From NCBI GenBank assembly GCA_026936335.1, contig JAPMXV010000030.1, forward strand, positions 372,001 to 436,000: 64,000 bases of DNA, read 5' to 3'. Positions 33,979 to 39,656 of the stretch are shown here, in pieces. How positions within the stretch are numbered: position 1 is the stretch's first letter; every line of letters starts with the position of its first letter. Source of the DNA: Mantamonas sphyraenae STR306. Lineage: Eukaryota > Protista > CRuMs. The notes beneath the pieces were generated by a model, which worked only from the letters and a program-made list of their open reading frames with translations, searched no databases and was not told where the DNA came from. Both the position numbers and the translations under genes were made by a program.

Positions 33979-36900
33979 TTAGAGGGTGGGGAGGTTGGGA
34001 ATGGGCGAACGATCATCCCCAAGGCTAGCCTCGCTCTCAGCATCACTGTCCTCATCATCGCTACTATCATCATCATCATCATCATCCGACTCTTCCCATT
34101 GGATGTCAGCTCCTCGAGAGCGCATCTCGTCGTACTTTCGCTGCCTCTTCTTCTTCTTCCTCCTCTTGTTCTTCTTGCTCTTTGTGCTCGTTGTGCTATC
34201 GCCTGTGTGGTCAGCCACCGCTGCCATTTCTGTGCTTGTGTGTTCCTCTTGCATGTCCACAGGTGCGTGGTCCTGCTCCTGGTTGTGCATGTGCCCAGCA
34301 TCCTCGTGCAAGTGGGCCGAGGCAAACACAGCGTCTGCAAGTGGCACGTGTGTCTCATCCGACTGCTGATACACCATTTGGGTGTCTGCACCATCCTCCC
34401 ATTCGTGTTTGTCGTCTGTCCCGTCTATCCCAGGTCCCTCGTCCACCTGCTCGGCACCCTCGGGCACCTCCCTGCGCAGGTGCGATGCATGGTATGTCTG
34501 ACTCACCTGTACGTCCCCTGTCACATCCTGCTTGCACAGAGGACACAGCCTGTCCAGTGTGAGCCATCGGTCGATGCATTCGACGTGGTAGATGTGTTCG
34601 CAGGGCAGCACACGCAGCTCGTCGTCCTGCTCGTACTCCACCAGGCAGATGGTGCACATGGCATCCTCCTCATCCATCATCCCCTCACGATACACCACCT
34701 TGTCAAAGGTGTCGATGAGGGGTTGGGGCACGCCACGCTGCTGTTCGCTGGCTTGGGTCTGGTTGGCAGCAGCGGCCACGTTCCACAGCTCAATGTCGGC
34801 CTCCTCGGCCGATTGGTTGCCCACCATGCGTACGATGGCCAACACAATGATGAAGAAGAGGACGGCGCCGGAGATGGAGAGGATGAGGACAATGTCCAGG
34901 ATGGAGGCCGGTCGTTCAGACACGGTGACGTCCAGACGAAAGGCGGTGGTGGTGCGTGCAAACACGGCAATGTAGTACGTGCCCACCTTGAAGCGTTTGT
35001 CGTCACTGTTGATGACAATGGTGTCCTTGCCATTGGCACCCGAGGCCCAGGTGAAGGACACCAACGACGGATGTTGGGCTTCGGTGGAGATGAGCAGATC
35101 GACGTCGCCCCCCTGGGTGGTGGGGCTCACCGTCACATTCAACTGCTGTGTGGAGTTGACCAGATCCACGGAGAAGTAGCGATAGGAGCCAATGAGCATG
35201 AAGCCCGTGACGGTGTTGCCACTACGCAGGGGCTCGTAGGCGGCCGCTTCCACGGTGGCACTGGTGGCAGAGCGTGCATACAACCCAACGTGCATGCGAC
35301 CCAACAGGAACTGTTCGGAGGAGGCGTCAATGATCATGCGCACCACCGTGTTGGATTGGAAGGAGGCGTCGGCCTGTGGGTTGGATCCATCCCAGTTGGG
35401 ATCGAGCTTGTGGAAGGCAGCGTTGAAGCGAGTGGGCATCACTGTGGAGCTGAGGGGATACTGGCCCGTGGCATCTGCAGGTTGGTTGGAGACGTAGATG
35501 GCAGCCCAGGCTGATTCGAGGGTGACGGAGATGACCATGATGCCACGTGCAGTGTCCACAGGCACACTGAGGTAGGTGTAGGCATAGGGCAGCAGCTGCA
35601 CGGTCACAGGGGTACTCTGGGCCACCAGACGCACCGTGGTCACAGCCATGTGCACCTCCACCGGCGTGTTGCTTGTGCTCTGAAGACCCACGTAGTACGT
35701 GCGTGCTCGTTGGCGAATGGCATCCCGCACCATCACCTCCGAGCCATCCACGTCCCTCTGCTGAAAGTTGGTGCTGCTGGGCTTCATCGTAGAGTCGCTC
35801 AGGTACGCATGCATGCGCACAGTCCTGTCCAGGGTGCGTGTGGTGGTGGCCGGTGTGGGCACCACGTTGAATGCCAACGCATAGCTGCCTGCCACAGCCG
35901 CTGCTGCCGTCGCCAGATCCGGGGACACGTATCGAATGTACCGGAAGCCCCCTTGGGCAGGGGCCGTTGTGACCAGGGTGCGATCTTGGAGCAGATCGGC
36001 ACCACAGGCGTAGTAGTCCCAGGAGGAGCAGGCAGCGCCTTCGGAGCCGTACAAGCGATCGCTGGCACCCTCGAGACACTTTTGTGTGGAATGGCACCAT
36101 CCACAGTCGCTGTTGTCGGTGCATGTGGCACACGAGGTGAGGTTGGAGCATGTGGCACAGCCAGTGTAGCGGTAGGAGGATTCGCGTGGGCAGGCGCCGT
36201 TTGCAGAGCCTGTGGCGTCGCCATTGACACAGGTTTGAGAGTAGGAACACCAACCACAGAGGGAAGTGGCACCACATGCGTCACAGGAGGTGTAGGCGGA
36301 ACATGGGAGGGGACAGGAGGAGGAGGAATTGTGAACCCATCCACTTGCACACATGCCAGCAAAGGGACCTGCACTGTGGCCATCCATGCAGGTGTGGTTG
36401 CCCACACAATAGCCACAGGTGGGATCCTTGTTGCAGGCGGCACAATTGACCGAATAGGTGGAACACGGCGTGGGACAGCTGCGCACGTTGAACACATCAC
36501 ACGTGGACGTGTCTGCCTGCTGCGTGTCCACACTCACACACCGTTGCGTGTCATTCTTCTTGCACCATCCACACTCGGGAAAGTGCGAGCATGCGTCGCA
36601 GGTGGCGTGGCTGCTGCACGGCGCCTTGCATCGGCCCACATTCCAGTCGGCAGCCAACGCACACGCTTGCGGACGTCCTTGTGTCGAGGCAGCGGCTGCC
36701 GAGCTGTTTGTGTCCATGCATGTTTGTGTGCTGTTGCACCAGCCACACTGAGGCAACAGTGTGCACTCGCTGCATGTGGTTTGGGTGTGGCAGCTGACAT
36801 TGCTGTAGCTCAGAGACCACCAATCGCCCGGCTGGGCCTTGCCCCTGGATTTGCCATTGAGCACCATGACACGTGTGGAGTTGAACACCACGGCGTCGTG

Positions 36901-38609
36901 TGCATCACGTGGCACGGGGGATTGTGCGTCTGTGTATCTGCGGTCGAGTTGGTTGCGCCACGTGCGTGCACCGATGTGGTACTGCCACAGGGTGCGCATG
37001 GGACAGGCCGATGTGGTGGAGGTGCCGTCAAAGCCACCCACCAACACCAACACACGATCATCCAATGCACTCAGCGTGTGCAGATGCACACGTGGTGGTG
37101 TGAGCAGGCCCTCCTGCCCTGCGGTGAGATACGCCCAGGTACGCGCTGTGAGATCAAAGGCCCACAAGTCGTCCAGACTGACCGAGGGCGATCCCTGCTT
37201 GAATCCTCCGTAAATATACAGTGTGTTGCCCACAATGGCAGCAGCAGACTCTCTGCGAGTGGGTGGTGATGCGGTGAGGGTGGTCTGCAGAGCAAACCCA
37301 CTGGTGCTCTTTGTCCACAGCCACACCGCGTTGCTTGTCCCACCCACCACCTCGCCTGCAAACAACACTGCCACATCAGCAGTCCATTCGGCCATTGCCC
37401 ATCCGTACCCCGGCATGGGACGTCCATTCGTTGCCTCCGTCCCATACACCTGGCTCCAGCTGTTGGTTGCTCGTGTGTACTTGTGCAGGTCATTGTGCAC
37501 CCCTCCACCATCCGAGCCTCCAAACACATAAAACGCCGTTTCTGTGGCTGTGCATGCCGCCTGGAACCGTCCCGAGTTGGTGCTGCTGGCCAGCGGGTGC
37601 AACATCTGCGTGCCATTCACCATCTCGTACACCCACAGGTCCTTCATGTACTGACTCGGGTGTTTGTACCCACCGTAGATATACACCTGTGAACCCCACG
37701 CGGCAGTGCACGCCCCTTCCCGCTCAGAGAACCCGTTGGCCGGCGCCTGGTCCAATCCCACCGGCGGAGTCGGTATCCAGCGCAGTGTGTCCTGTGTGTC
37801 TGCACACGCCACACCCGTCCATCCTGCGTCGCAACTGCATGTGTTGTCTGTGCTGTTGCATGTCCCATGACCCGAACAGTCCTTGGGACATGTTCCTGTG
37901 CACATAAAGTGGAGCAACGCACAACCGTTGTGAGCGCCACACACGCGTGGGGCAAGAAACCGTCAACCATGCTTATTTGGGCGACAAGCGACGCATGTGG
38001 GAAGGACGCTGACAACCCAGATGGGGTCAATTGCCCAGGGACACACCGGTGGGGCCACCTACCTGGGCTGTACGACAGCGAAAAGCCGTCCCGGCCGACA
38101 AAGAGGTCGGTAAAGAGATGAACGGTGACCTCGGGACCCGAGGCAGAGATGGTCTGTGGGAGAAGGGATGGGCAGTGGGGAAAGGGAGGTGGTGGTAGTG
38201 GTGGGGGGGGAAGGGATTGAGTGGGTGGGAGGGGGGGGGGGTGGTTGAAGGGTGTTAGGGAGGTGGGGGAAGGGGTGAGCGGGTGGGGGGAACATACCAG
38301 ATTGGTTGCTGCTCCAGTGAGGGCATGGAGGAGGGGACTGGACTCGTTGTGGCCATCGTGGATGTAAATATAGTCATAGGCACACTCTGTGTCGTAGGTG
38401 ATGGTGATGGTTGTGGGCAGGGAGCTTGCGGCGGGGCGAATGTACCAGTAGCAGTTGAGCTGGTTGTTGGTGATGGTGCCCGGCCCAGAGCCATCCGAGA
38501 ATTGCCCAGACGAGGCAGTGAGCACTGTGGATGGTTGGCAATGCCCATGGACCACAGTGACACACAAGAAGAGGAGGAGGAGGAGGGTGAGTACGAGCAC
38601 ACGGGACAT
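33979..38609 (-). CDS. Attractin/MEGF8-like type I membrane protein (SP-CUB-EGF-Kelch-PSI repeats-beta domains-TM) with cytosolic RING-H2; exons 38609-38298, 38153-38063, 37895-33979
   Basis: Signal peptide; CUB (SDGSGP..CYWYI..TECAYDYIYIHDG); CPKDCSGHGTC; about 6 GG-Kelch repeats; about 5 C..C....CGWC PSI repeats; TM; CTIC...LPCEHIYHVECIDRWL...CPLCK. Confidence 0.9.
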
Positions 38610-38675
38610 CGTGGTGTGTGCCTTCGGGTCGTTGGTTCCCTCTCCGCATGCAATCAATTCTGTTCAGAAATCGAA

Positions 38676-38710
<35 letters not shown>

Positions 38711-38723
38711 AGCAACACACATC

Positions 38724-39546
38724 ATGGCCAACGACACCAGTGAGTTCTGGAACAAAGTGAGCAAACAGTCTGCCGAGGGCATCCCGGAAAAGGTCAAACT
38801 GGTTGTTCGCCTGCAGATTGTCCAATTGGTATGTTCAACATGGAAGGTGGATCCATGGATCCACTGAGTGTATGTGTGGCTGTGGTCCTCTCTCTTGTTG
38901 TTGTGTGGCTTCCCCTTGCCAATTGGCTCCTGCTGTGTGTCTCACTCTGGCTGACACCCTTGCCGCCCAAAAATGGCCGTTCGACGTCGCAGCTTTTGGC
39001 GCTGCCATTGATCTATGCCATGTATGTGACACTGTCTGTGAACGTCAACCTACTGGTGGCACTCGTGTGTCTCATTATCTTTGTGGTGGACGTGGTCATT
39101 GGTCTGGTGGGCATGCTGGGCGCCGTGTATCAAAACAAAGGCGCCGTGCGCTTTGTGAGTTGTTGACGAGTCAGGCACACGCGAGGAGATGGGATCCGAT
39201 ACTGACACTGTGTGTTGGCCTTGTGTGTGTGTGTGTGTGTGTGTGTGTGTCTGGACCACACTCATGTTCACAGTACAAGTACATTGTGGGCTGGGGCCAG
39301 ATCTTCTGGGAGTTGTCTGGACTGGGCATTGTGCTGTACTCTGCCTTCCTTTGCTTCACTGCCGATCCCACACAGGTGCTTCTGTGCCAGGACCAGGTCA
39401 TGCTGTGGCTCATGGCTGCTCGCTTCCTCATTGTCATCGTCGTTGTGTACATCTCTGTGCGTCCGGCCAAGGAATTGGCCAAGGCCATGGGGCTGCAGAT
39501 CAAATCAGCCAAGGAGACGGAGAAGAAGCAGTCTGGTCGCGTGTAG
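38724..39546 (+). CDS. Small 4-TM membrane protein (tetraspanin-like topology); exons 38724-38828, 38993-39154, 39274-39546
   Basis: Phase-0 GT-AG introns give a continuous protein of about 179 aa with 4 hydrophobic helices; IGLVGMLGAVYQNK. Confidence 0.7.
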
Positions 39547-39656
39547 GGTCACACACACACACACACACAGAGGGTGGTTGGAGTGGATGTGTTTGTCATC
39601 GGGGAAGGGGGAGGGAGCGACGTTGGACCCAAAACAAAAACGCCCTCGTTGTAACC

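Follow-up and report, generated by a model that had tools for sequence, protein, structure and literature searches.

In contig JAPMXV010000030.1 of Mantamonas sphyraenae STR306, a marine flagellate of the deep-branching CRuMs lineage, we analyzed a stretch of 64,000 nucleotides (nt) (positions 372,001 to 436,000 of the forward strand, here called the window), which carries on its minus strand a gene for a large membrane protein with its own RING-H2 domain. The gene occupies 33979-38609, as an initial annotation made from the DNA alone had proposed, with the ATG at 38609 and the stop codon at 33979-33981 read from the DNA. It consists of three exons with a coding total of 4,317 bases, equal to 1,439 codons, and is present as a single copy in the M. 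sphyraenae genome. The locus was found in four public sequencing runs of one study, three of which (X1 to X3) cover it well. Runs X1 and X2 contain the unspliced genomic form, while X3 contains one spliced contig of 4,197 nt; that X3 is RNA is only guessed, and none of the listed runs is on record as RNA. The exons were searched one by one, and window 33982-37893 on the minus strand (1,304 residues) served as the in-frame reference for exon 3. The order of the domains is signal peptide, CUB, EGF, Kelch propeller, five plexin-semaphorin-integrin (PSI) repeats, three jelly rolls resembling the pre-peptidase C-terminal (PPC) domain, transmembrane (TM) helix, GLD-like motif, RING-H2 and acidic/basic tail. 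The exons, introns and domains are located as follows.

38298..38609, minus strand: exon 1, signal peptide and N-terminal two thirds of the CUB domain; donor confirmed by the X3 contig
38544..38609, minus strand: signal peptide, residues 1-22, a hydrophobic core followed by small residues ahead of the predicted cleavage site
38154..38297, minus strand: intron 1, 144 nt, GT..AG, pyrimidine-rich; skipped by the spliced X3 contig (record 15)
38063..38153, minus strand: exon 2 (91 nt, end in phase 1), which encodes the last third of the CUB domain; both edges are joints of the X3 contig
37896..38062, minus strand: intron 2, 167 nt, GT..AG; skipped by the X3 contig
33979..37895, minus strand: exon 3, from the EGF-like domain through the tail and the stop codon
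37801..37895, minus strand: EGF-like domain at the start of exon 3 (Pfam EGF_Teneurin 2.2e-6, EGF_2 2.7e-5)
36799..37776, minus strand: six-bladed Kelch beta-propeller (Pfam PF24681 3.8e-36, PF24981 3.6e-28)
35986..36798, minus strand: five PSI repeats with five C-x2-C...C-G-W/Y-C cores (Pfam PSI 8e-14)
34903..35985, minus strand: three tandem PPC-like jelly-roll beta-sandwiches, at about 35623-35985, 35254-35622 and 34903-35253
34822..34902, minus strand: single TM helix, exon-3 residues about 998-1024, mean hydropathy 3.03
34678..34737, minus strand: GLD-like juxtamembrane motif R-G-V-P-x-x-L-I-x-x-F...Y, between the TM helix and the RING
34534..34656, minus strand: RING-H2 (C3H2C3); Pfam zf-RING_2 2.1e-14, and 3e-13 in the scan of exon 3
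33979..34530, minus strand: low-complexity tail of 183 residues and stop codon; the tail has abundant Asp, Glu and Ser, a single polybasic run and, at its end, a cluster of acidic residues and serines

The reading frame of exon 3 is open for 1,304 codons, and everything from the EGF-like domain to the RING and the tail lies within this uninterrupted exon, as the initial annotation had seen. In the X3 contig both introns are removed at the predicted GT..AG sites. Otherwise this contig is continuous from 38507 to 34000, with the CUB domain, the rest of the ectodomain, the TM helix, the RING and most of the tail on one molecule. Because no break interrupts it between the CUB exon and a point beyond the RING, the fusion from CUB to RING is carried by one transcript, and the gene is real and expressed. 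The sole break in read support is a low-complexity stretch at 34052-34182, which was passed over in read placement. Among the runs, 11 of the 14 coding variant sites are synonymous, and of the three replacement variants one each lies in the signal peptide, in a propeller blade and in the disordered tail. The coding sequence is thus under purifying selection. That the fusion is an artefact, caused by mis-assembly or read-through of two genes or seen in a decaying pseudogene, is scarcely credible given the contigs of three runs across the locus, the continuity of the spliced one and the long open frame with its mostly synonymous variants. The view that neither splicing nor a frameshift has created the fusion therefore stands. 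At three positions (34427, 36640 and 37669) the base of the assembly differs from all of X1 to X3, which results in one I-to-T exchange in the tail and two synonymous changes. These mismatches could reflect an alternative allele or a consensus error of the long-read assembly.

The CUB domain was recognized in exon 1 by Pfam (1.5e-6, 28.9 bits, profile positions 3-78 of 110), above the curated cut-off, and the CUB domain of the Capsaspora attractin matches the same exon at 1.8e-5. The translation of exon 2 resembles the end of a CUB domain and is too short for a Pfam match of its own. In the propeller, the match to PF24981 (Attractin/LZTR1 beta-propeller) covers profile positions 1-279 of 289; five blades were assigned by their motif pattern and the sixth by eye from the translation. 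The PSI array is 32% identical to that of the Thecamonas protein AMSG_09601. For the stretch between the PSI repeats and the membrane the initial annotation had given two beta-rich segments. Here the architecture had to be changed to three PPC-like domains, while all its other elements, from the signal peptide to the acidic/basic tail, were found again. Three periods of the PPC consensus appeared in an alignment with repeat proteins, and Pfam gave a PPC match of 2e-4. An AlphaFold2 model contains three beta-sandwiches with a mean predicted local distance difference test (pLDDT) of 79. The third domain, which directly adjoins the membrane, reached a pLDDT of 92.8 when folded alone, and Foldseek matched it best to a Bacillus collagenase PPC domain (5sv5) and to the collagen-binding domains of ColG and ColH. 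The distribution of N-x-S/T sequons, with 12 before the TM helix and one after it, fits an extracellular N-terminus. The nearest relatives of the three PPC-like domains are giant environmental proteins of 1,600-2,900 residues (P0005, P0007, P0009-P0018 and others), which consist of 10-17 tandem PPC/UPF0669-like jelly rolls and in some cases end in fn3.

The TM helix is the only hydrophobic segment detected in the exon-3 product. It is followed by a linker of about 55 residues, which contains the GLD-like motif and leads to the RING. The GLD motif is the defining mark of the plant ATLs (PMC3161093). Its glycine is invariant in an alignment with TM-RING-H2 proteins of Closterium, oomycete and plant type. 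The RING itself was found where the initial annotation had placed it (about 34530-34657), with the spacing C-x2-C-x14-C-x-H-x2-H-x2-C-x10-C-x2-C. All eight zinc ligands are present, as are the Ile, Trp and Pro that contact the ubiquitin-conjugating enzyme (E2), and a Lys stands at the linchpin position after the last Cys. The nearest solved RINGs are those of RNF13 (top match, 1e-14), RLIM, RNF38 and Arkadia, with ZNRF3 at 6e-9, in agreement with the assignment to the RNF13/ZNRF3/ATL type of H2 RINGs made at the outset. Judged by its sequence, the RING-H2 is intact, of the RNF13/ATL kind and unrelated to the RING of MGRN1. No Pfam domain was identified in the tail by a Pfam scan.

For relatives, residues 1-1150 were compared in an exhaustive HMMER search with 1.84 billion representative proteins, which gave 38,006 matches. 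The best-scoring ones are giants of repeated Kelch, PPC, RING or PSI units, each covering one part of the query. A word-index homologue search with the exon-3 product was swamped by Kelch words and returned three weak matches, and a feature search of the ESM Atlas gave generic RING clusters only, below 0.8. Colinear ectodomains were found in several lineages. The Capsaspora protein CAOG_07456 aligns with the EGF-Kelch-PSI part at 92 bits (query residues 2-630, Capsaspora residues 241-852). This protein is a genuine member of the attractin family, having laminin-EGF domains and, as its equivalent of the MASRPFA motif, M-S-T-R-P-S-A. The Thecamonas trahens protein AMSG_09601 is colinear as well (1e-24 over EGF-Kelch-PSI, 5e-28 over PSI); a PPC-like domain directly precedes its TM helix, and its tail carries no RING. 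An environmental CUB-EGF-Kelch-PSI protein (P0072) likewise shows a colinear EGF-Kelch-PSI array and a tail without a RING. Vertebrate ATRNL1, a sea cucumber attractin and a starfish MEGF8 are weakly colinear from the EGF domain onward.

The membrane-to-RING part has relatives of another kind. Kelch-TM-RING-H2 proteins of 400-750 residues form at least 16 representative clusters, including Aphanomyces invadans H310_04915 and Globisporangium ultimum K3WHR7 from oomycetes. Oomycete and environmental members are 50% identical to the query in the RING and 26-29% in the propeller, and a literature search found no publication on protist Kelch-TM-RING-H2 proteins. The Closterium protein P0096 aligns without a break over the last PPC-like domain, the TM helix, the linker and the RING (77 bits). 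The best match to the ligase cassette, P0120, is, like P0072, encoded on short metagenome or run contigs only. In Diphylleia rotans, which also belongs to the CRuMs, we observed a protein of 1,979 residues with several Kelch propellers and a protein-kinase domain (P0003, EukProt EP00002).

The initial annotation had called the protein attractin/MEGF8-like. This holds for the CUB-EGF-Kelch-PSI order, which was recovered by Pfam on the exons and by the Capsaspora alignment, and for the rank of this gene as the best match of the Capsaspora attractin in the genome. On the place of the propeller the tree is indecisive, and the C-terminal marks of the family are absent. In a maximum-likelihood phylogeny of 64 propellers, a clade with a support of 99/94 unites animal ATRN and ATRNL1, the two propellers of MEGF8, and Capsaspora, and the query stands outside of it in a polytomy, where the oomycete-type and Thecamonas-type propellers do not group with it either. 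Searched alone, the propeller matches generic Kelch proteins with 50-65 bits, against 26-32 bits for ATRN/MEGF8. Its stronger Pfam score for PF24681 than for PF24981 is shared with proteins of Thecamonas, Paratrimastix and oomycetes, unlike holozoan ATRN. Bona fide attractin/MEGF8 members carry C-type lectin and laminin-type EGF domains, and exon 3 has no Pfam match to PF00059, PF24973, PF00053 or PF24972. The juxtamembrane domain shows no similarity to a profile of 15 ATRN/MEGF8 Stem regions (hhalign probability 6.9%), and MEGF8 is not among its top 50 Foldseek matches, where PPC, ColG and GOLD folds appear instead. A marginal positional match to Capsaspora (E = 0.2) had made the PPC-like domain a candidate for a diverged MEGF8/ATRN Stem, which neither hhalign nor Foldseek upheld. 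A MASRPFA-type motif, which is present as such or as a close variant in the Capsaspora, Ichthyophonus, Mylnosiga and vertebrate members, is absent from the cytoplasmic part. Between this part and the MEGF8 construct of the solved MMM complex no similarity was detectable among the best 60 of 70 matches.

When the Capsaspora attractin was compared with the M. sphyraenae genome, the present gene came out far ahead of all else, including the separate CUB match in exon 1, and the C-terminal 450 residues of the Capsaspora protein had no match in this genome. The second-best Kelch locus was considered as the true attractin and rejected, as it encodes a multi-Kelch protein without EGF or PSI. MGRN1 was searched for as well, and a separate orthologue is present. 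The two loci are given below.

G000:C74:104375-109003 (locus L014:1376-6004), plus strand: multi-Kelch open frame of 1,542 residues, almost all Kelch with several propellers and no other Pfam domain
G000:C10:57024-57167 (locus L015:1192-1995), minus strand: MGRN1/LOG2-type RING-HC orthologue, on a separate contig

The Mantamonas MGRN1 matches human MGRN1 (entries 9qru/9qs6/9qsh) at 2e-22, in the segment before the RING and in the RING itself. In the literature MGRN1 is regarded as nearly pan-eukaryotic and MEGF8/ATRN-like proteins are described as confined to animal-like eukaryotes; the separate MGRN1 gene of Mantamonas agrees with the first of these views. No attractin-type MASRPFA adaptor for MGRN1 was detected in the M. 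sphyraenae genome. As MGRN1 is kept as a separate gene, nothing shows that the RING has replaced the MGRN1 partnership.

These results bear on the possibility that the protein is the true Mantamonas orthologue of attractin/MEGF8, in which the C-terminal half (lectin, laminin-EGF, Stem and MASRPFA tail) was replaced and the attached RING-H2 took over the job of MGRN1. Four domain types in the same order, a relation to the Capsaspora attractin that resembles a reciprocal best hit with no other attractin-like gene in the genome, the weak colinearity of vertebrate ATRNL1 and starfish MEGF8, and a sister position to the ATRN/MEGF8 clade that is not rejected by the approximately unbiased (AU) test would all fit such an origin. 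Still, we regard it as unlikely, since the propeller lies outside the family clade with generic Kelch propellers as its best single-domain matches, the Pfam score pattern is not the holozoan one, the four C-terminal hallmarks are absent, MGRN1 is retained, and the same RING cassette occurs elsewhere behind unrelated ectodomains. This possibility corresponds to the hard-wired attractin-ligase partnership proposed in the initial annotation, be it ancestral or derived.

We consider the product to be probably a type I membrane protein of 1,439 residues that acts as a receptor-type RING-H2 ubiquitin ligase, built as a mosaic of a surface scaffold and a ligase cassette and not a member of the attractin/MEGF8 family. 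The more general description given at the outset, a single-chain type I membrane protein of a unicellular eukaryote that combines an attractin-style domain order with its own RING-H2, is borne out. The CUB-EGF-Kelch-PSI block is equally colinear with the Capsaspora attractin and with Thecamonas AMSG_09601, and the scaffold is common to AMSG_09601 and, more distantly, to holozoan attractin/MEGF8. The TM-GLD-RING-H2 cassette is widespread, occurring in plant ATLs, oomycete Kelch-TM-RING proteins and the Closterium PPC-TM-RING protein. In oomycetes and a charophyte it follows other ectodomains, which favours module shuffling, the simplest evolutionary account, over an ancestral attractin-ligase fusion. 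An old EGF-Kelch-PSI(-PPC)-TM surface scaffold, as in Thecamonas, may thus have acquired, or retained, the common cassette. Holozoan attractin/MEGF8 would have elaborated a scaffold of this kind on a branch of its own, working with MGRN1 instead.

Several points weigh against the mosaic reading. When the query was forced to be the sister of the ATRN/MEGF8 clade, the cost was 13 log-likelihood units with an AU p of 0.363. Because the sister position is not rejected, the poorly resolved Kelch tree is indecisive and neither supports nor excludes a distant kinship with ATRN/MEGF8, although the query stands outside the clade. The protein is not a demonstrable orthologue of animal attractin/MEGF8, and to call it a mosaic rather than an orthologue is a judgement and no proof. 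A full-length counterpart was not found among the 1.84 billion representatives of the exhaustive search, and the mosaic reading does not account for the long acidic/basic tail with its polybasic run. Finally, the observations themselves extend to architecture, expression and selective constraint, and every functional step is drawn by analogy.

One close comparison is with the MMM complex of attractin, ATRNL1 or MEGF8 with MGRN1. In both cases a type I protein with the CUB-EGF-Kelch-PSI order and a beta-sandwich next to the membrane connects the outside of the cell with a RING ligase on the cytoplasmic face. In contrast to the animal proteins, the query lacks a C-type lectin domain, laminin-EGF domains, a Stem of the MEGF8 type, a long solitary helix and the MASRPFA/ICD. 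Its ligase is a covalently attached RING-H2, while MGRN1 is a protein of its own, myristoylated and of the RING-HC type. The query resembles the attractin/MEGF8-MGRN1 system in its logic and is, in our judgement, not a member of the family. ZNRF3 and RNF43 are the paradigm of receptor-type E3 ligases that clear surface receptors. Like the query they consist of a single chain with an ectodomain, one TM helix and a cytoplasmic RING-H2, but their ectodomain is PA-like, binds R-spondin and lacks Kelch, PSI and PPC, and they are specific to animals. The PA-TM-RING (Goliath) proteins RNF13, RNF167 and RNF128 (GRAIL) share the RING spacing, the CP-x-CK ending and the position of the RING about 50-60 residues past a single TM helix. 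They differ by the PA domain, for which the exons of the query gave no Pfam match, while the query has an ectodomain of about 1,000 residues made of unrelated modules.

Plant ATLs have the TM helix, the glycine-led motif and the RING-H2 in the same order, together with a Trp three residues past the sixth ligand. However, they have essentially no ectodomain and an extra residue before the third Cys (x15), while the query has a very large ectodomain and, like its oomycete counterparts, the x14 spacing; in the cassette alignment the extra residue is present in the sequences of plant type. The protist Kelch-TM-RING-H2 proteins resemble the query in that they begin with a signal peptide or a Kelch propeller and continue with a single TM helix, the juxtamembrane motif and the RING-H2, but are devoid of CUB, EGF, PSI and PPC, and their propellers do not group with that of the query. 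Conversely, Thecamonas AMSG_09601 and P0072 share the colinear ectodomain, with the pre-TM PPC-like domain in AMSG_09601, but no RING in the tail.

By analogy with ZNRF3/RNF43, the RNF13-type ligases and the MEGF8-MGRN1 complex, the glycosylated, cysteine-rich ectodomain would face the outside or the endosomal lumen and bind a ligand or a neighbouring membrane protein, and this binding may set the specificity or activity of the ligase. The RING-H2, about 55 residues below the membrane, would recruit an E2 of the UBC4/5 type, so that membrane proteins in cis, or the receptor itself, could be ubiquitinated on their cytoplasmic lysines. Such targets would then be directed to endocytosis and lysosomal degradation, as with ZNRF3/RNF43 and the RNF13-type PA-TM-RING ligases. 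A different division of labour can be imagined, in which the protein is mainly a receptor for adhesion or ligand capture, serving gliding or the recognition of prey or matrix, and the RING provides only for its own turnover or quality control. Its CUB, EGF, Kelch, PSI and PPC/collagen-binding-type domains are of kinds that adhesion and matrix-binding proteins typically contain, auto-ubiquitination is common among RING E3 ligases, and Mantamonas is a gliding, surface-associated flagellate (PMC10492846). Nevertheless, we find this improbable, as the same cassette acts on other membrane or cytosolic substrates in the RNF13 family, in ZNRF3/RNF43 and in the ATLs.

Upstream of the ligase gene, and head-to-head with it, lies a gene for a small protein with four TM helices. 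The two features of this region are the following.

38610..38723, no strand: divergent intergenic region of 114 bp with a (CA)n tract, common to both genes
38724-39546, plus strand: head-to-head four-TM protein of about 179 residues, exons 38724-38828, 38993-39154 and 39274-39546

In X3, the intergenic region is flanked by the transcript ends of the two genes. Intron 1 of the tetraspan gene (38829-38992) was taken from a spliced X3 contig, and intron 2 from GT..AG only. Since the contig skips 38829-38992, the hydrophobic stretch of the open reading frame 38831-38992 is intronic. MOSMO binds the Stem of MEGF8, and the neighbour was therefore considered as a MOSMO-like partner. This was rejected, because the tetraspan protein gave no Pfam match and no match to any solved chain, and its extracellular loops measure only about 7 and 13 residues, which leaves too little for a claudin-like fold. 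Microsatellites of the (CA)n/(GT)n type occur in nearly every intergenic region and intron nearby (38667-38717, 39215-39250, 39549-39570 and elsewhere), the divergent promoter included.

Single-chain TM RING-H2 ligases as a kind were known already, and Kelch-TM-RING proteins stand unnamed in public databases. New, within the 1.84 billion representatives searched, is the full combination, a single chain that joins an attractin-style ectodomain to a ligase in a lineage distant from animals. We see no evidence for an ancestral attractin-ligase fusion, nor is a single-chain attractin-MGRN1 partnership shown. There are only a few E3 ligases of the receptor type, and good knowledge of them is limited to animals (ZNRF3/RNF43, MEGF8-MGRN1) and plants (ATLs, GDU1-LOG2). 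If the mosaic reading is right, a lineage branching at the base of Amorphea would have built its own from an attractin-style ectodomain and an RNF13/ATL-type cassette. Because of the oomycete Kelch-TM-RING proteins and the EGF-Kelch-PSI-PPC protein of Thecamonas, our comparison suggests that extracellular Kelch/PSI scaffolds predate Holozoa, in contrast to the animal-like restriction of MEGF8/ATRN-like proteins in the literature, and that their coupling to ubiquitination has arisen more than once. It is even conceivable, though quite doubtful, that the CUB-EGF-Kelch-PSI module, shared by CRuMs, apusomonads and holozoans, is much older than animals and by its nature senses when the cell surface is to be remodelled through ubiquitin, with the ligase attached covalently, as a RING-H2, in Mantamonas and non-covalently, as MGRN1, in holozoans, by ancestry or by convergence. 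In that case, the single-chain protein of Mantamonas would provide a natural, minimal model of what is sensed by the attractin/MEGF8 ectodomain, which still lacks a ligand.

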